64,000 nucleotides of DNA, taken from the NCBI RefSeq assembly GCF_964204645.1, contig NC_134034.1, forward strand, positions 6,918,914 to 6,982,913. The letters run 5' to 3'. Of this stretch, positions 37,570 through 47,600 are shown piece after piece (within the stretch, counting starts at the first letter, position 1; each line of letters begins with the position of its first letter). Below the pieces are notes generated by a model, which was not told the origin of the DNA, made no database searches, and saw only the letters and a list, made by a program, of their open reading frames with translations. The stretch is from Tubulanus polymorphus. Lineage: Eukaryota; Animalia; Nemertea. The position numbers were made by a program, and so were the translations under genes.

Positions 37570-37995
37570 TCTGTCAAAATGTAACAACAAATATACCCGT
37601 CAGACTTTCATTTTTTACCCGTAAAAACTAAACATCGAAATTTACTCGTCAACTCAACTTAAATACTCGTCGAAATGTCGTATTTGAAGTGTCAAATACG
37701 ATCTCACATATTCTGACAAAACGAAATCGCTATCGTTGATATTCTGTCAAAACTGAATGTTCATTTGACGCGTCAAAAACGGTATCGTAGAATTCTGTCA
37801 AAATTAAAACTTCATATTTGCCAATCGCCCATCAAACACAAAGTATTTATCCGTCAAAAACATTGTATTTACCCATCAAAAACATTGTATTTACCCGCCA
37901 AAACCAATGATTTTACCTGTCAAACACATCGATTTTACCTGTCAAACACATTGTATTTACCCGTCAAAAATATCTTGTTTTTACCCATCAAATTA
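37570..37995 (+). repeat. Degenerate minisatellite (tttacccgtcaaa / attctgtcaaaa units, ~21 bp)
   Basis: The motif recurs more than 12 times. Confidence 0.7.
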
Positions 37996-39158
37996 TGCAT
38001 CAAGTTACATATTTGGAGGAATATCTGGACCTCAAATATCAATTTTTGAAGACGCTTCAATGGATTGGCCTCATATTCTTTTTCGCCAAAATTAGCACTA
38101 TTCGCTGATTTTTTAGGGAAATTTTGAAGACTCCTCGACCTTTATCTTTTACATATATTTCAGTATAGAATACATGCAATATGAGCTTTTGCGCGAACTG
38201 TTACTCGCGCGAGCATTCTACGAATTCAGCGCTTTGCGCGAGGTGAAACTATCGACGGGAGCCGTTCGAGTACGCGAGCTTTAAATCACCACTCCGCCCC
38301 GTTCGAGTGCGCAAGCTTTAAACCACCACTCCGCCCCGTTCTAGTACGCAAGATTTTTTGAGAACATTTTCATACGCAAATACGATATTCAGATATTTTA
38401 TGAACATGTTTGATGAACATTTTACGCCTAAGTTGCACGGATTTAGGAAAACCCACAACCATGTATATTCATGATGAATCATCATAGGCCTATGACGGTA
38501 CTACAAGTAATGCTGAGATCGTCTCAATTGACTGACGGATTGACGGATTGCCATAAAAACAGCAATTTTTATTTCCCCATCTTACTTTTCTGCAAGAAGT
38601 CATAAAAATTATCTTCGTGCATATATATTTGAAATTTTGAATAATGCGTTATATAGAAAAATGGTTTTCATTTAAAAAATAAAAAATAAAAAACCACCGT
38701 CCTCGACATTTCCAACTAAGCCGCGAGTTTTCAGTATTTTTAACTTACACAGCTCGTAGAATCGTATATATGTTAATCGTGGAATCAAGATGCAAATTGT
38801 GGTGAATTTTAGTGGGAACTAGACGCCATGATGAATCATTTAACCCTCTAACTTGATTAGTCATTCTTGTATTTGGCTCGGCGAACTAATTTAACAAATT
38901 AATCCTAAACAAAAAGACATATTTTGCAAATGTAGTGGGAACTACTAATTTTTAATAGCCGCCGCCGCAAATTGTGACTGAATGATTATGCCCCTAAATG
39001 CGTAATTAGATTAAACCATACATTGTCATCTCTCCCTGATTTTCAATATAAATTCTTAAGCCTTGAATTATAAACCTTAATATACATTCAACCTTCCAAA
39101 CGAAAAGACTACATTTTATAGCTCCTTGAAATACATTCCAATACGTACACGTGTGATA

Positions 39159-41350
39159 ATGAATGCTGCGGCGCGTAAGGCATGGCAACAGGTCGAAAAA
39201 GCAGTTAAAAGATACGCAGAGGTTACCAAAAACGAAGTTGCAGCTTTGTGTTTTTTTGGAAACCAATCTCAAAAGATTGAGAGTGTTTTGACTGGGACTA
39301 GCGATTTAATGCAGGAATTAAACGAAAAAAGTGGCGAAATCTTGGAGAATATGAATAAAAGAAAAGGTGATGACCGTGATGGAGTGATATTGTCATGTGA
39401 AAAAATTTGCCTGCCGGATGTGAAGAAAATTTATGGAAGATCGTTATGCGATTTGAACAGCAATGAAGTTCGAGGATTTTGCGCTAATTTAGTATTCACG
39501 AGCAGAAAACTCTTAGGAAGGATAGCTAACAATCCGAAATGGGGTGACGAATCGCAACGTTTACCCTGGTGGCCTGAAACACTGGAATGGAAAAATCCCC
39601 GGTGTGATTTCAGACCAAAAAATCAGCGTGATATAACATTTGCAGAAGCTATACGCAAAGTTTGTGGAGCTGCTTATCAGTTCCATGAAGTATCTCAACT
39701 AACCGGTAAGAAGTTTTTTATGTAATAATATTTAATGACATTATTTTTTTCATGAGGCCTTTCATTTAGTTCGGACAATTAGAATACATATAATTAGTAT
39801 CTTCAAGAAGTGATATAAAAGCGGTGGATAAATTTAATTAATATCATAAACATATTTACCTGTGAACCTAATTTAGCAAACTAAGGGAGCAGTGAGATAT
39901 AACCATCGTAAATTTAACTATACGCATTTAATTTTAGACTGCCTTTTTCATGATCAAAAAAGTTGGTCTCAATATACATGTAACAATGTTGAAATATATG
40001 TCCACTTCTCAACAGGCAATGACATTACAGCAGAACTGACACCGCCTTTTTCATGATTAAAAAAGTTGGTCTCAATATACATGTAACAATGTTGAAATAT
40101 ATGTCCACTTCTCAACAGGCAATGACATTACAGCAGAACTGACACGGCTTTCAGAAAATTCGTCATTCGTTTCTGTATTACCAGCACCAGTTGAATTCGC
40201 AGATGTACCAGAGACTGAATTCGCAGATGTACCAGAGACAAGTAAGTAACACAGGAGACTTGTTTGACATTAGTTGGGCTATTTATTCTAATGTTTTGGA
40301 TGTTCAAATAATAACTAAAAATTCATTCGAGAAAATTATAATTTATTATTTACATTTGAATTCTATAATGATTTAAAAGGATGAGGAAAATACCCGTACA
40401 GAAAAAAACATAATTTTTACATTAGCAATTGCTGGACAAAACTTTATTGGTATATTTAACTAATAATGTAAATTATTTCTTTGTCTACGTTTTTCAGCCA
40501 AAAGCTCGTCATGTAACACAAGTGCTGTAAATCATCTGCCTCAATCATCATTTCAACTCAGCAAGTCCATGATTATAGAAACAATTGAAAATGGCAACAT
40601 AAGTGACATCTTGAAGCTGAACGTAACAGAAATATCAGGTAAATGAATACACTAATGCCTAATAACATTTTTCCAAACTGCAGCAAGATATTCTTTACAG
40701 TATATACAAATACATTTTTCTGAATTAACCTTCAAAAATCTAAAGTTCTGATCTATATACATGTCGATATTCTACTGATTATAAAAATGTATGAATTCTA
40801 TAATGAAAATAATGTAAATTATTTCTTTGTCTACGTATTTTATCCGAGAGCTCGTCATGTAACCCAAGTGCTGTCAATCATCTGCCTCCATCATTTCAAC
40901 TCGGCGAGTCCATGATTATGGAAACAATTGAAAATGGCAACATAAGTGACATCTTGAAGCTGAACGTAACAGAAATATCAGGTAAATAAATACATTAATG
41001 CCTAATAACATTTTTCTTCAAAAATCTAAAGTTCAGATCTATATACATGTCAATATTTTAAAAATTATAAAAATGTATGAAATAATAAAATTCAACTTAT
41101 GAATGAAATTATCAATTAAATAATTGTATGAGTTCATGAAATAATAATTTTCTAAATAGCCAGGATGAACGAATATGATGGACCTGAAATCCTAAGCCGC
41201 ACAACAGATGATGTTTATGAAGACAGTAGCTCGAAAGGTGATAAAGCCGTCAGCAAAACATCAATAACAACAGAAACTAAACGCCCTAACAGGAAGAGGA
41301 AACCAACAGAGAAAATGTCCGAGTACTTGAAGAAGCGCAAAGTTCTGTAA
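39159..41350 (+). CDS. Transposon-borne protein with an NRF1/EWG-like DNA-binding domain; exons 39159-39705, 40119-40241, 40498-40638, 41160-41350 (333 aa)
   Basis: All introns GT-AG and phase 1; 1002 nt open to TAA; AATAAA at 41362. NPKWGDESQRLPWWPETLEWKNPRCDFR...ITFAEAIRKVCGAAYQFH resembles NRF1 PGWGKESCKPIWWPEDIPWANVRSDVR...VSWTQALRTIVKNCYKQH. Basic C-terminus RPNRKRKPTEK...KKRK. Confidence 0.75.
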
Positions 41351-41429
41351 ATACATGTATCAATAAAACAATTAAAATATTCATATTTCCTTGATGTAAT
41401 AGAATCAATATTTGAGGAAAGGTACTTTA

Positions 41430-44400
41430 TCACGACGATGCATTAATCTTCTGTTTCTTATCTTTATTCTTTATTGTTAAAAACAAAGCAATGTTACGAA
41501 CAAAATTTTCAGGTTTCATGTATGAAAGCTGAGCTTTTAACCTTACAATGCCAGTATTAGCTTGTTCATTGATTTGAGTATTAATGCTGTGCAGGTCAAC
41601 ATTGGACTTGTATGTATCTATCTTGTAACCTTCACAGCATCCAACATGATTCTTCCAATGCAAACGGTCAACACAGAACATAGTATGTAGAAAAAACTGT
41701 GGTTCCCTAAAAATCATGTAAAAAGAAAGTAAATACTTTAAGAAATAGAATTATTTCTAAATAAGGTCACGTGCAATGAGATATTTTACTATTGCGATTA
41801 CAATTATTTGTTTTAAAAAAACATACCGGTTCAAGCTATACTGATGTAGGCGACAGGCATTGTCATATACAATAACTTTCGGAGCTTTTGCAAATCTTGT
41901 TTTGAAGATGCTAAAAGGGTGCCTGGGAGATTCATGACTCTGCATAACCTAATTAATAAAAGTGGATAGTTTATTTCATACATGAGTGTAGTTAAAAATT
42001 ACACTGTCCAATTAAGTTAGGCATTAATAACTTTAAAACCCACTGTATACATAATTTAAGATGCAATAATAAAAATAAATTAAATAATAATTTGTTTTTA
42101 ATCTTAAATCTTGTATGTAGTAGGTTTGAAACTTATTATCTGTTCTCCACATTTGAGTGGTAATTCTACTATTAAGTTAAACACATACCTGGAAACCATA
42201 GTTAACACCATGCGAACAGAAAACTGTGAAGATGCCCGAAGTTAACACCCAGTGAGTTTTTGCATACTTGTTACAACTATCACCTCTTCTACATTTAACA
42301 CGGTCATTCTTTGCATCCATTTCGTAGTTTCCGTCTCTAAAATAATGAAGGGTCAAATAAATCAGGTATATTTAGAATACAATTTTACTTGTTGCATAAT
42401 TACAGATTCACTAATTATTACCTGTGTAGTTTTGGGAGACAGGGAAAAAAACTTAATGTATTGAACAGATCTTCATTTGTTGATTCCCGCAGCACATGCT
42501 TGGGATTATCAGATACCTGCAAGAAAAAGTAAAGTTCATGCTATCATTGAGTTAACTAGTTTTTCAATTTATAATTTTTAATTTATAATCACATAATGTA
42601 CCTGGAAGCAGACTTTGGCACGTTGAATAAGATCCTTCAGGAAACCAATACAATACTCATCTAATCTACCAGTAGATACTGATATTCTGAATGTAGTTGT
42701 GTATAATAGGTGCACATCTTATGAGCTCGCCTATTTCAGCATGGTTTTCGCTTTAAAAAAAATCAGTTTCAGCAGAAAGACATCTTTCGACTAGAGCAGC
42801 TGTCTGTATGAAGTTCGTTGACTGCACAACTGCACAAGCTGGTCCATTGCATGATAACGCTTTTAAAAGTTCTTGTTCCTCTGGGAGAGCATTATTGTCA
42901 CCATTCCTTTCAACAAGAAATTTCAGATTAGATAAGTGTGGAGTTTTCCCAAGAATATTAACCAACTCCTTCTTTTGGGTATCAGTATGCGGGACTGGAG
43001 TGTGTGGTGACTGCTTTGTTTTGTCACTCAAAATAGGTCCACCAGCATACTGGCACAACAAATTCCGACATTTAGCATTAGGCATGAACACTCTATCATC
43101 ATGTTTGCTCCCAGAAATCACAGGACTATCTGCAGATATTATAGGCTGAACATCTTGCAATGAATGGAGCAAATCCTTACGAAAACCGAGATCTACACCA
43201 TCGCATATTACCACGGTTGGGTAATCTTTACTAAGTGGACAACGAAACTCTGATGTCAAGTTGAAATCGAGAAGTCGCATGAATGCACTCCAACTCTTTT
43301 GCAATGTGTGCAGCGGTATTGCTGATGATCCGAGTAAAATATTTGCGGATCTTTCCATGCTTCTGGAATAAATACACAATCCGAATGAAAATGTCTGGTT
43401 ACTTTCTCCATTAGTTGTTGTATATTATTGAAAGTTACTAAATAAACAAACCCCAACTACCCTTGATATGATGACAGGGGATTTCTAGCCTCAGTCATGG
43501 CATGCAGATATTTGAACAACAGTCTGTAATCTACCAGTTGAAGTTATTAACATTCAACAGTAATTCCCTCTGTCCATCAAAGAAGAACTGACAATTACAA
43601 TCACCGATTGATGGTCGATAATACACTGCAAAATAAATATCATTACTTGAATATTAAAATAAATTTCATGCGATAAAGTTTAAAAATGTGTCAATACTTT
43701 AAATATATGTACATACAGGCTCGTACATACCATTAATTCTTTTCAAAACACCACCAAGCAATGCGAACTCCTGGCTGCCTGTTTCATTAAATACAGTGGC
43801 CTTTTTATCGAAACGCCAATTCATCAGAACAGGATCGCGACAATCCCACGAAAAATTATGAGTACATCTTGACTCTGCATCAAAAATAGGCACAAAATTC
43901 TCTGGGTATGGCATGCCATACATTCGGTTCTGTAAGACCATCTGCAGTTCAGTGGGTAGCGGATAAGAAATAAGATGACGTGACACTACCGACATGCTTG
44001 TGTGACTATGTGAAACATTTGATAACGGAGGCTGAGGTTGTATGCCCTTTTCATCACACCAGTCTTTATACATGTTAACATGAACACAATTTGAATTGTA
44101 TTTGCATGTTTCACAAATAAAATGCGCCATGCGACTGCTCCACTTAACAATGTTCACTGACTGTTGACAGGTAGCAGAAATTAATATAGGCGCTTGCGAC
44201 AGAATATGGATATCTGTACCATCAGCTGGCCACACACACATTTCTATATCCCTGTATAACATAGTTATGGCAAAGCAATGCTTGCAATAATTTGCTTGAC
44301 ACCGGACCTTAAACTGCGAGATTGCTTCCGTTAAATTTTTGTCCAATGACGATAATTGTTTCATGCGCCTGTATCCAACGGGACAGTTACAATTTAATAT

Positions 44401-44587
44401 CGAGCACTCTCCATCCGCCAAAAAGTATGGCAATTGGTTCTTTACAATGAAATGTTCGTTGCCATCTGCCAGTACAAAGACTCCAGGAAATAAATCCCAG
44501 TATTCTTTGTTCTTTCTTTAAGTCATCAAATATATCTTATTTTCATCCAACGGACATTCTATGTGTACGGTTGTGACACTTGGATTA
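41430..44587 (-). pseudogene. Spliced KDZ-type transposase (HMGXB3-related, SWIM/CxC N-terminus), disrupted; 5' exon(s) unresolved (possibly up to ~45170)
   Basis: Exons 44587-43731, 43625-43461, 43362-42602, 42516-42422, 42336-42189, 41948-41827, 41706-41430. Motifs: CNC...CKH, FDGQRELLLNVNN, VVICDG, LTSGIFTVFCSHG, HESPRHPF, VYDNAC, VDRLHWKNH..C, NTQINEQAN. Stops at 44518-44520 and 42753-42755; frameshifts near 43540 and 42690. Confidence 0.85.
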
Positions 44588-44600
44588 CTGAAATAAAAAA

Positions 44601-44606
<6 letters not shown>

Positions 44607-44655
<49 letters not shown>
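44607..44655. repeat. (AT)n microsatellite in a transposase intron
   Basis: About 24 AT units. Confidence 0.95.
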
Positions 44656-44658
<3 letters not shown>

Positions 44659-47600
44659 TACTAAATATTAAAAATAAATAAATAAAACATTTTTAAGTTT
44701 AAATTCAATCATCCTGGTTTCTACATGTTTTACTCAAAATCAAACATGAAAAATGAAAAAAGAAATACATGCGTGAAATTTATGTCATCACCGAGGTCAT
44801 TATTTCGGATAATCCCTTCGAGCTGAGCGAGCGAGCGCTCGAACTACGACGACAACGCCCCCAATCTGCCTCTTTCTGTTTATCATTTGATTTCTATAAG
44901 TCACAGAGGAAGGCTAAAACGATCCTATTCTGGATACAGTTAAATTTCTGGTAAGTTGATTCAATATAGCTACAAACCTGGTTTTATTTTGTTGCGAGCG
45001 CGATTTCAATGACATTGACAATGATTGGCTTTCTACTCCACCGGTCGTTGTCGTTGTTGTTGCATCATTGCCACCTTGCTGACGATTTTCAACAAATAAT
45101 CCTCTTCGACGACGTTTCTTGCACAGCTGCTTTTTCTCCTCTAATTTATTCATATAAATATCTAAAGTATGCACACGGAGACGTGACGTTCACGCCGTTT
45201 TCTTAGCTTGTGATTGTTAAGAGTGCCATAAACTGGCACGGCAGGCTTGTGTTGCCCTGTTAGCGGACTAGGCCAAATGATAAACTATTGAAACGAAACA
45301 ACGGTATTGAAAATAATTAACATTTTATGACTAAACATTTACCATTTGACATTTTTGTAAACAGATAATTCGGAAAGTTACCGGTCCTATTAACATCTAT
45401 ATCCAGCTCTTATAACAGGTCAGTGAAAAAAAAACATCGTTGGTTTCGTTTTCAGATTTTACGCTCCGGTAAAACTTTAGATTTTTCGTATGCTATTGTA
45501 GACCCAGAAATGTCATATTTGATTCGGAGACACGGTCAAGTTTTTATCATGGATTAATTTCATCCTTTCAAGTTGCAAACCACGCACGAACGCTCACTCA
45601 CTCGCGTACTCGCTAACCACACTCCGCGCGATCGAGTTCCGAGAAGCCTTCTCACTTCGCGCGCTCGAGCTTCGAGTAGGCCTTCTCACTTCACGCGCTC
45701 AAGCTTCGAGTAGGCCTTCTCACTTTGCGCGCTCGCGCAAAGCCGAATGCTCGCACGAGTAACTCTTCGAGCAAAACATCAAAACGATACCCATTTTATA
45801 GCTCTATATTTGTATAGAGCCCATCAGCATGAGAAAAAAGTTTGGTTGATCGGACTCAAGATGGCTGCCCTCTGACCTTTTTTGGGCCCACAATGTCAGT
45901 TTTGGCCTGAATTCTTGGACCTGTTGCTTCCTAATGATTTGCCAAATTATTCCTAATGATTTTTCATTGAAATTTGTGATGGGCATTCTATGAAAAGAGG
46001 TCTTTAATACACCAAACAGGTATTTTCGATCAGCCAATTGGCATGCAATTGGCGGCCATCAAAGTGTCATCAGTACTCATTTGTTGATTGAAAAGGGTTT
46101 GTCGAGGAAAATAGTATTTGTATGATTGTTGTAAGTTTCAAGGTCAGATTTCAGTAAGGTCAATGGGATCCTTAATGTTGCAAACCAATATCCTCTAATA
46201 TTACGTCCATCACGTCGCTTTAGAGGGGTCCGTAAAAGGGCGCTGTTTTAGCTTAAAAGTTAAGACTGGGTGCCTGTCAAATTCTGCATCCCCTGCATTC
46301 GTGGTCATAGGTTACAGTTGCTATGAAACAATTTCAGTGAGGTCCAAATATTTCTCCAAATATATCCCAGCGAGAAAACCTGGTTACTATTTATAGTAAA
46401 ATTGAAAAAATTCTGTTTTTTTTTAAATACCGCAATTCCGCAATATGACAGCACCGAACTTTTGGTGCGCTTTATGAATAGCAAACGTTTGGCAAACTAA
46501 TAGATTTGATTAAGAACAATGAAATTAGCTTTGTTAGATAGATTTTAAAACAATCCTTGGTGAAATAAGCAGTGTAAGTCGGATATAATTTAACAGTTTC
46601 CAGTCTCCTTTAATCCTCTCAGAAGTTGTTAAAGATTCCTAAATTCTCTCTGGTGTATAGCGTTGATGCTGTTATACACAACCCAAAAACATACGATGGA
46701 TAGCCAGCAGTAGAGGTGCGAATATGGTGAAGGAATGATGTTGGTTTATAGATTTTATATATAGGCTATAAGTACTGAGTTCGGCAAAGATGACTCTTGA
46801 TTGCGCTGCTGACTGGCGGCTGCAACCGCGATGCATAGGCTATATAGGTCAATGATCCAGTTATTTAATTTTACTGATTTAAGTAAGACAAATGAATTAT
46901 TTTTTTCTATAAGTCTGATCCCATGCTTTTACTAAAGCATCATTTGGAAAGTAAATCTCAAAAAGTAGGAATTAGAGAGCATTTAACCTAGAGGCTTTCA
47001 GTGATGTGAAGCTAGAAACAGGGATGATTGGAAAAGAATTGAAATGAATTTTGGGACGATTTTAGCATTGGTTGACGTCTGTTATGTCATGCAAATGCTA
47101 GTAAAATGGATCAAAAGTTGTGGTAAAAAAAAAGGCGCCGACTCTTCTCATTTTCATAGTCATTTCAAATTGTAACTCCATTCTCGTAAAACATTAGACA
47201 CAGCTGAGAATGACTCAAAATAATGTAACGGTTATTCCCTACAAAGATAGCGTCACCGGATTAATTGACCCAAAAAGTAAGGTTATTCTATTTCATTTTT
47301 TTCGTTAGTTATGTGGTAGACGAGCGGGGGTTAAGCAATCGTGTAGTGATATGTCCGCATCGACATTGGCAGTAAAGAATGGGGAATGGCCTCTTTTGAA
47401 TAGAAAAACATAAATTTATGTTACCCCGGTATATTAATATCATAGTCTTTAAATATCACTGTTATTCCTCCTATCAGAAACAATGAGATTAATTGGGATT
47501 AATTCTCAGCGGCAGAATACATATTTCTAGAGTGGAATGGTTGGCCTACTCATGTCTGAAACCCGTGTAGGTAAATTATGTGATCGCGCAGGAATGCCTT

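Follow-up and report, generated by a model that had tools for sequence, protein, structure and literature searches.

The window analysed here, a stretch of 64,000 nucleotides from the genome (268 Mb, 77 contigs) of Tubulanus polymorphus (Nemertea), at C10:6918914-6982913, contains a cut-and-paste DNA transposon, now dead, that belongs to the KDZ (Kyakuja-Dileera-Zisupton) superfamily. The element carries two convergent genes: a spliced transposase gene on the minus strand and, on the plus strand, a gene coding for a protein with a DNA-binding domain of the NRF1/EWG/P3A2 type. We are nearly certain that it represents a two-gene KDZ transposon lineage; the complete explanation that we favour, in which the NRF1-like protein would be a partner binding the ends of the element, is probable at a distinctly lower level of confidence. 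Taken singly, the KDZ superfamily, the NRF1 domain and two-protein transposons as a concept are known; it is their combination, in an animal lineage distributed across three phyla, that appears new as far as the searched literature goes. The sequence-only reading of the window knew of no description of this pairing, and our literature search likewise found no report linking NRF1 domains with KDZ or Zisupton elements, Repbase and Dfam lying outside that search.

The element had been proposed, from its letters, to be a delimited unit of 7.6 kb with a target-site duplication, subterminal inverted repeats and a split target repeat, and all of these features were confirmed by comparison with other copies. 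A genome-wide DNA search with positions 38161-45804 retrieved a sole other full-length copy, L021 (C2:11799412-11806447), which lies on a different chromosome at 93-99% nucleotide identity and whose alignment runs from window position 38163 to exactly 45804, with nothing beyond. Short derivatives retaining just both ends were found on C9 (950 bp), C3, C5 and C1. The ends read as 5'-CAG(G)TATA...TATAGCTC-3', and these termini recur in other subfamilies of Tubulanus. The main structural features are as follows.

38161-45804, unstranded: whole transposon, 7,644 bp, termini 5'-CAGTATAGAAT...TTTTATAGCTC-3', delimited by sister-copy alignment and short derivatives
38154-38160, unstranded: left target-site duplication TATATTT, 7 bp, read directly; a single TATATTT in uninterrupted paralogues of the flanking repeat
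45805-45811, unstranded: right target-site duplication TATATTT, 7 bp, on the same evidence
38161-38360, unstranded: 5' subterminal region, with an inverted-repeat arm at 38182-38218, two 37-nt direct repeats at 38262-38335 and GCGC/CGCGAGC-type motifs
45563-45804, unstranded: 3' subterminal region, with four 34-nt direct repeats at 45613-45747, an inverted-repeat arm at 45745-45781 and GCGC-rich motifs

The two arms of the subterminal inverted repeat are 37 nt long and 84% complementary. In three uninterrupted copies of the flanking repeat (L054, L056 and L057) the left and right flanks of the window element are contiguous, with one TATATTT between them; these loci are paralogous empty sites. 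The single TATATTT in them confirms both the 7-bp duplication and the splitting of the target repeat. Chance is excluded, as nine further insertions of the family also show matching 7-bp duplications, making 10 with the window element, across two phyla. The repeat that hosts the element (45805-46100 plus 38075-38160) is interspersed, with more than 1,500 candidate copies at ~77% identity, and a tandem array of a 22-bp unit (~9 units) occupies 37806-38003, just left of the insertion site.

The plus-strand gene consists of four predicted exons.

39159-39705, plus strand: exon 1, coding for the NRF1-like region of dimerisation and DNA binding; it ends at a conserved 'LTG' with donor G|GTAAG
40119-40241, plus strand: exon 2, acidic stretch, placed by AG/GT sites and frame; its acceptor lies within a 103-bp tandem duplication (39938-40143)
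40498-40638, plus strand: exon 3, placed by AG/GT sites and frame
41160-41350, plus strand: last exon, basic C-terminal tail, coding to 41347, with the TAA stop at 41348-41350

All predicted introns are GT-AG and of phase 1, and the exon lengths sum to 333 codons, in agreement with the convergent four-exon gene of 333 amino acids that had been called initially. The stop codons of the two genes, expected to lie about 80 bp apart, are separated by 79 bp (41348-41350 on the plus strand, 41430-41432 on the minus strand). Exon 1 and the last exon show no frame disruption in the window copy or in L021, where the last exon is 98% identical. The region of exon 1 is conserved across the Tubulanus paralogues, and the basic tail occurs also in the hemichordate and amphioxus homologues. 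A 343-bp tandem duplication at 40462-41081, not present in L021, contains a second copy of exon 3 without an AG acceptor.

The presence of an NRF1 domain in this protein, suspected from a few motifs, was upheld: by profile, sequence and predicted fold, the protein can be regarded as a member of the Nrf1_DNA-bind domain family. Exon 1 matches Pfam PF10491 (Nrf1_DNA-bind) with 46.7 bits (cut-off 23.5; E 4.2e-12) over profile positions 47-208 of 213, and five further Tubulanus paralogues and an amphioxus open reading frame (ORF) score 46-56 bits (54 for amphioxus). A PDB search aligned exon 1 with the human NRF1 chains 8K3D/8K4L at E 2e-7, the N and R of its 'WKNPR' falling on N242 and R244 of human NRF1. 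These residues, together with R206, are critical for the recognition of TGCGC half-sites (PMC10810270), so that two of the three key DNA-contact residues are aligned in the transposon protein; the R is replaced by K in two paralogues. A word-indexed protein search with exon 1 gave no match; an alignment query retrieved four relatives from the protein library, and a wider alignment including host exons 962.

An AlphaFold2 model of the domain, built on nine paralogues, reached a mean predicted local distance difference test (pLDDT) of 70, with values of 76-93 over approximately residues 81-183 and low confidence in the N-terminal part. Foldseek placed this model on 8K3D with a template modelling (TM) score of 0.78 and a root-mean-square deviation of 1.9 A over 101 columns, and on 8K4L at E 4e-5. 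Only NRF1 entries were significant in this search of PDB folds; every non-NRF1 match had E>3, the next such fold standing at E 3.5. The protein was also predicted to form a homodimer through an N-terminal helix-strand-helix (residues 4-34 and 49-68), with an ipSAE (interaction prediction score from aligned errors) of 0.70, where the best of three controls had 0.00; the score of 0.70 may reflect the model's memory of a solved NRF1 dimer. Among solved structures, 21 of 30 homodimers and none of 23 single chains reached the mark set for ipSAE; three runs agreed in at least 63% of contacts, with a partner pLDDT of at least 68. Since the NRF1 dimer has already been solved, this prediction indicates likeness rather than proof.

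The minus strand contains five large and several small open segments that are collinear with full-length library proteins, as listed here from the stop codon upstream.

41430-41705, minus strand: last transposase exon (T_E), D-x-x-H and N-E-Q motifs, stop at 41430-41432; 45-55% identity to the C-terminal KDZ region of library proteins P0006 and P0152
41826-41948, minus strand: exon T_D, ESPRHPF...VIVYDNAC motif; 60-88% identity in diverged paralogues
42189-42335, minus strand: exon T_C, GIFTVFCSHG motif, placed by paralogue and homologue alignment
42424-42507, minus strand: small exon of approximate limits, from tblastn of P0152 (46% identity over 28 amino acids)
42599-43379, minus strand: large central exon (T_B) of approximate limits, used as library query; two private lesions
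43466-43626, minus strand: exon contributing part of the CxC4 module, with a C-x-C ... F-D-G motif; its alignment to P0006 is continuous but crosses a change of frame
43711-44517, minus strand: N-terminal cysteine-rich exon (T_A), open over 272 codons; 39-41% identity over 266 amino acids in paralogues
44917-45189, minus strand: candidate first coding exon with a basic KKRRRR stretch, open frame, 90% identity in L021; a similar basic ORF occurs in the paralogous locus L031

Searching a library of 1.84 billion proteins with T_B (42756-43424) returned 171 matches (best E 6.5e-33), and transposase relatives were found in Tubulanus, Glandiceps talaboti, Ptychodera flava, Branchiostoma, Owenia and Pecten. 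Several of the relatives exceed the cut-off of Pfam KDZ (PF18758; 26.6 bits), namely P0002 (34.3), P0050 (35.3), P0056 (35.0), P0039 (29.5), P0098 (27.7) and P0001 (27.7), or that of CxC4 (PF18717; 26.9 bits), namely P0006 (34.4), P0050 (29.0) and P0071 (29.4). T_C, T_D and T_E are 41-55% identical to the KDZ-domain region of P0006 and P0152, and T_A aligns to residues 68-378 of P0006, which end in the CxC4 match of that protein; in the window the CxC4 module is split by an intron between the end of T_A and the exon at 43626-43466. Through these full-length relatives the spliced minus-strand gene can be assigned to the KDZ type, as initially proposed. The accompanying proposal of CxC/SWIM modules held in part: CxC4 stands on relatives above the cut-off, and a SWIM finger in T_A, where a C-x-x-C...C-x-H pattern is visible, was discarded as Pfam did not detect it. 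C-D-G in T_B, Y-D-N-A-C in T_D, and D-x-x-H and N-E-Q in T_E are candidate catalytic residues.

The window transposase carries three lesions: a 1-bp deletion at ~43541/2, leaving one base fewer than in L021; a TAA at 42753-42755 in place of the AAA of L021; and a 2-bp deletion at ~42677-42679. At these three sites the transposase of L021 is intact, and it bears lesions of its own (a 226-bp deletion and three 1-bp indels). To judge from these reading frames, the transposase of the window copy is inactivated and its NRF1-like gene still open. A (TA)n microsatellite lies at 44585-44669, upstream of the large transposase exon. Three 3-kb Logan contigs (L045, L047 and L048) contain uninterrupted ORFs of 784-896 amino acids for related KDZ transposases; they look like assembled transcripts of other species, which would mean that KDZ relatives are expressed.

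A six-frame scan of the Tubulanus genome for Nrf1_DNA-bind revealed, besides a multi-exon host gene on C3, 17 other matches, mostly in single exons, and 10 kb around 15 of these was examined. At nine loci (L030-35, L037, L040 and L042) a diverged transposase homologue stands in convergent orientation 1.5-3 kb downstream of the NRF1-like gene; identity with the window element is 30-60% for the transposase and 30-48% for its partner. The remaining six are multi-copy fragments, four of which keep the 5' terminus of the family ~1.3-1.5 kb upstream of the domain. Counting L021, both genes therefore occur convergently at no fewer than 10 loci in addition to the window, and these represent three or more divergent subfamilies. 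Comparison of copies gave the limits of two further subfamilies, and all five of their insertions have 7-bp duplications (CACAATC, CAGTAGG, AACGATG, ATACATC and AAGACAT) and ends of the form 5'-CAGGTATA...TTTATAGCTC-3'; the inverted repeats of the L031 subfamily measure ~210 bp. No NRF1-like neighbour was found at the 13 other KDZ loci detected by Pfam in this genome, and the partner thus marks one KDZ clade. At least two other KDZ families without an NRF1-like neighbour have several near-identical copies, situated for example at C2:16360582, C8:2544095, C6:11058925, C12:8555215 and C4:6656898.

The survey for pairs in other invertebrates that had been suggested at the outset found them in Ptychodera flava, Glandiceps talaboti and Branchiostoma belcheri. 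In Ptychodera, a KDZ gene is followed at 164 bp by a convergent annotated gene of 384 amino acids with a Nrf1_DNA-bind match; a Ptychodera sequence that ends within its locus (L051) gives no information on the pairing. In Glandiceps, a partner of 385 amino acids is identical on three chromosomes, in elements that are 99.5% identical, are bounded by different duplications (TGTATTG, AATAAAG and ATATATA) and have the ends CAGGTATA...ATACCTC; this lineage appears to have been recently active there. In one of these copies (L058), apparently complete, the transposase is collinear with nearly all of P0002 (collinearity, not frame, was compared), and the two others (L059 and L060) are internal deletions that have kept the partner gene and the ends and lost the transposase. 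A fourth, more divergent pair of Glandiceps is convergent. In Branchiostoma belcheri, an ORF of 644 amino acids, whose N-terminus gives the amphioxus score of 54 bits cited above, lies 1.1 kb downstream of the transposase and in tandem with it.

The pairwise identities of both proteins among six elements are correlated (r=0.87 over 15 non-independent pairs), and sequence comparison indicates that in Nemertea, Hemichordata and Cephalochordata both genes have remained linked as they diverged in parallel. The lineage is characterized by a 7-bp duplication, 5'-CAGGTATA...TA(G/C)CTC-3' ends, and a CxC4-KDZ transposase accompanied by a partner of ~330-390 amino acids, which is composed of an N-terminal NRF1/EWG/P3A2-type dimerisation and DNA-binding half, a middle that is acidic or of low complexity, and a basic tail. 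Several decayed or deleted copies of Tubulanus and Glandiceps (the window element, L021, L059 and L060) retain an open NRF1-like gene; their number is small.

What might the partner do for the element? In the terminal 350 bp of both ends of the window element, GCGC occurs 17 times per kb and CGCG 19 times per kb, against 1.2 and 0.6 per kb inside. The L031 subfamily has CTGCTCGG-type repeats and the L033 subfamily GTTGCTCA-type repeats that include near-palindromes; in both, a GAGCA/TGCTC core is concentrated at the termini (30 per kb against 1.8 inside in the first, 23 against 1.5 in the second). Short motifs specific to each subfamily reach, in the terminal 350 bp, 13-17 times their internal density, and in Glandiceps the subterminal repeat is CTGCTAGTA. 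Host NRF1 binds TGCGC half-sites as a dimer (PMC10810270). We propose that the NRF1-like protein would serve as the element's own sequence-specific DNA-binding factor, that it would bind the short subterminal repeats at both ends, probably as a dimer, and that, once bound, it could either bring the transposase to the ends or position it there, or else activate the two promoters near the ends. Whether the partner is such an end-binding accessory factor is, in our opinion, about evenly balanced.

Some of our results weigh against this explanation, or against parts of it. The amphioxus pair is tandem rather than convergent, and the arrangement of the genes is therefore not in itself constrained. 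The score of the predicted homodimer possibly stems from the memory of 8K4L. None of the RNA runs searched contained the element. Single transposase exons of the window, T_A included, had no Pfam match at E<1, and a six-frame PF18758 scan of the genome, which hit 20 other places, missed the window element; for this reason KDZ membership rests on the relatives. The ratio of nonsynonymous to synonymous substitution rates (dN/dS) between the window copy and L021 is 0.30 for the partner (11 substitutions) and 0.93 for the transposase (14 substitutions), which are too few to weigh. Finally, the cysteine-rich N-terminus of the transposase could just as well be what binds the subterminal motifs.

The NRF1-like gene could instead be cargo that stays outside the transposition reaction and, as a transcription factor, activates the two promoters near the ends of the element or protects them from silencing by CpG methylation. 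Such cargo would have precedents in fungal KDZ, hAT, Harbinger and other elements that carry TET/JBP genes (PMC12730594), thought to counter silencing. With convergent genes, both promoters adjoin the CpG-rich subterminal repeats; the acidic or low-complexity middle of the partner resembles an activation region, and host NRF1 binds promoters at GCGC sites and activates them (PMC10810270). However, short motifs repeated at both ends are the classic signature of binding sites for a transposition complex, and the motif changes from subfamily to subfamily along with the protein. The internal deletions of Glandiceps, having lost the transposase and preserved partner and ends, fit either reading. 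A role as cargo is a possibility to which we attach clearly less weight than to that of an end-binding accessory factor, and both roles may hold.

A further question concerns the relation of the transposon-borne domain to the NRF1 of the hosts. A maximum-likelihood tree was built from 24 sequences, namely 12 domains carried by transposons and 12 NRF1s of hosts in 12 bilaterian genera, the own host genes of Tubulanus and Ptychodera included; it is unrooted and has long branches. The comparison with host NRF1 that the sequence-only reading had called for left the transposon-borne proteins outside the host cluster: the 12 host NRF1s, which evolve slowly, group tightly together, a 99/99 split separating them from all 12 transposon-borne sequences, and no transposon copy groups with the NRF1 of its own host. 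The transposon copies fall into three deep groups, one per host phylum, and in this unrooted tree the host cluster attaches among the three, next to the hemichordate group, at 91/84. The window protein is ~25-35% identical to host NRF1; the DNA-binding core of host NRF1 is, by an estimate made by eye, roughly 75% identical between nemertean and human. On these sequence comparisons the window protein is best described as a member of the domain family and not as an NRF1 orthologue. The gene structures differ as well: in the Tubulanus host gene (on C3; P0163) the domain is divided among four or five exons, none of its introns lying at 'LTG', while in the transposon gene it is contained in one exon followed by an intron at 'LTG', at a position common to the hemichordate genes.

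These data bear on the possibility that the transposon of each host lineage independently took up the NRF1 of its own host in recent times, in which case the pairing would be convergent and not inherited. Capture of genes by DNA transposons is common, and the transposon-borne sequences do cluster by host phylum. Nevertheless, the 99/99 split, with no copy beside its own host gene, and the differing intron positions exclude independent recent capture, and the CAGGTATA terminus, the 7-bp duplication and the gene order are shared between phyla; we accord this scenario very little probability. Being unrooted and having long branches, the tree does not choose between one ancient capture and an origin of NRF1 from the transposon. 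A root inside the transposon diversity would make host NRF1 the derived form; that the NRF1/EWG/P3A2 host family descends by domestication from the accessory protein of an ancient KDZ transposon nevertheless seems to us rather improbable.

That the plus-strand gene is an unrelated insertion or a host gene lying by chance in one copy, a view favoured by nothing beyond the window holding a single copy and according to which other copies would never carry the gene, has practically no probability and is ruled out by the presence of both genes in the sister copy L021, in nine diverged paralogues and at four loci in three other species, all 17 non-host Nrf1_DNA-bind matches being moreover multi-copy and each of those examined adjoining a transposase or the 5' terminus of the family.

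Among described systems, PIF/Harbinger elements pair a transposase with a Myb/SANT protein and En/Spm-CACTA elements encode TnpD and TnpA, with subterminal TnpA sites. The Tubulanus element resembles both, by analogy, in its combination of a transposase with a separate presumptive DNA-binding protein and in its subterminal motif arrays; it differs in transposase superfamily, in DNA-binding fold and in having 7-bp rather than 3-bp duplications. The closest functional parallels of the partner would be TnpA of En/Spm and the Myb-like protein of PIF/Harbinger. Compared with NRF1/EWG/P3A2, it has the same domain by profile, sequence and predicted fold, residues aligned with two of three contact residues and a predicted N-terminal dimer, but the transposon protein is much shorter, has another C-terminal half and other introns, and is multi-copy.

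Kyakuja elements are reported to have 7-bp target duplications and 5'-CA...TG-3' termini without terminal inverted repeats, and the duplications of Zisupton and Dileera measure 8 bp (PMC12730594). By duplication length, not by tree, Kyakuja is the closest KDZ group, and its 5'-CA start is also that of the window family. The 3' end of the family is, however, ...CTC and not ...TG (termini 5'-CAGG...CTC-3'), and inverted repeats are present (37 nt and subterminal in the window, ~210 bp in the L031 subfamily); we have not filed the element, compared here by its ends and its duplication, as Kyakuja. The fungal KDZ elements similarly carry a second gene, TET/JBP, but the hosts here are animals and the second gene codes for an NRF1-type DNA-binding protein and not for a dioxygenase. 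Possible counterparts of domesticated KDZ genes such as HMGXB3 are distant relatives of the transposase exon T_B in Owenia (annotated as 'HMG domain-containing protein') and Pecten; they differ in being single genes of 9-15 kb with many introns and no NRF1-like neighbour at the loci examined.

Good descriptions of KDZ elements exist mainly for fungi and fish, and little is known about the animal members, the ends and the accessory genes. The family reported here provides a delimited animal KDZ lineage, common to three phyla, with its termini, 7-bp duplication, gene structures and non-autonomous derivatives, and the NRF1-like protein is a new kind of partner for KDZ elements. The structure of the NRF1 DNA-binding fold dates only from 2023, and the fold is regarded as the hallmark of a single-copy host factor. 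Its transposon-borne branch offers multi-copy, fast-evolving variant proteins together with variant candidate sites, which makes the recognition code testable, as is the question raised by the pairing, namely whether NRF1 came from a transposon or was taken by one. Transposon genes have probably been counted among the 'NRF1 family' factors of amphioxus and hemichordate genomes; in one census, three such factors are given for one species and none or one for the others (PMC8122590).

Some minor observations can be added. The annotated host NRF1 of Ridgeia piscesae (P0162) contains the DNA-binding core twice in tandem ('AQLR.FIP...WANVRSDVR' blocks), which may reflect a genuinely duplicated exon or an error of the gene model. 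Another element of this family (L037, C10:6985301-6995300) lies 2.4-12.4 kb past the end of the window; it belongs to a different subfamily, being 96% identical to L033, is flanked by the duplication AAGACAT and carries both genes, including an annotated RefSeq transposase fragment (P0151). According to a hand calculation from coordinates, ~18 loci of the family are all situated at 0.37-0.61 of chromosome length, for example at 13.9-16.1 of 32.1 Mb on C1, 11.8-15.4 of 31.9 Mb on C2, 13.7-14.9 of 27.8 Mb on C3, 12.8-14.8 of 24.9 Mb on C5 and 6.96-6.99 of 14.3 Mb on C10. This distribution suggests an accumulation of the family in central, perhaps pericentromeric or low-recombination, regions.

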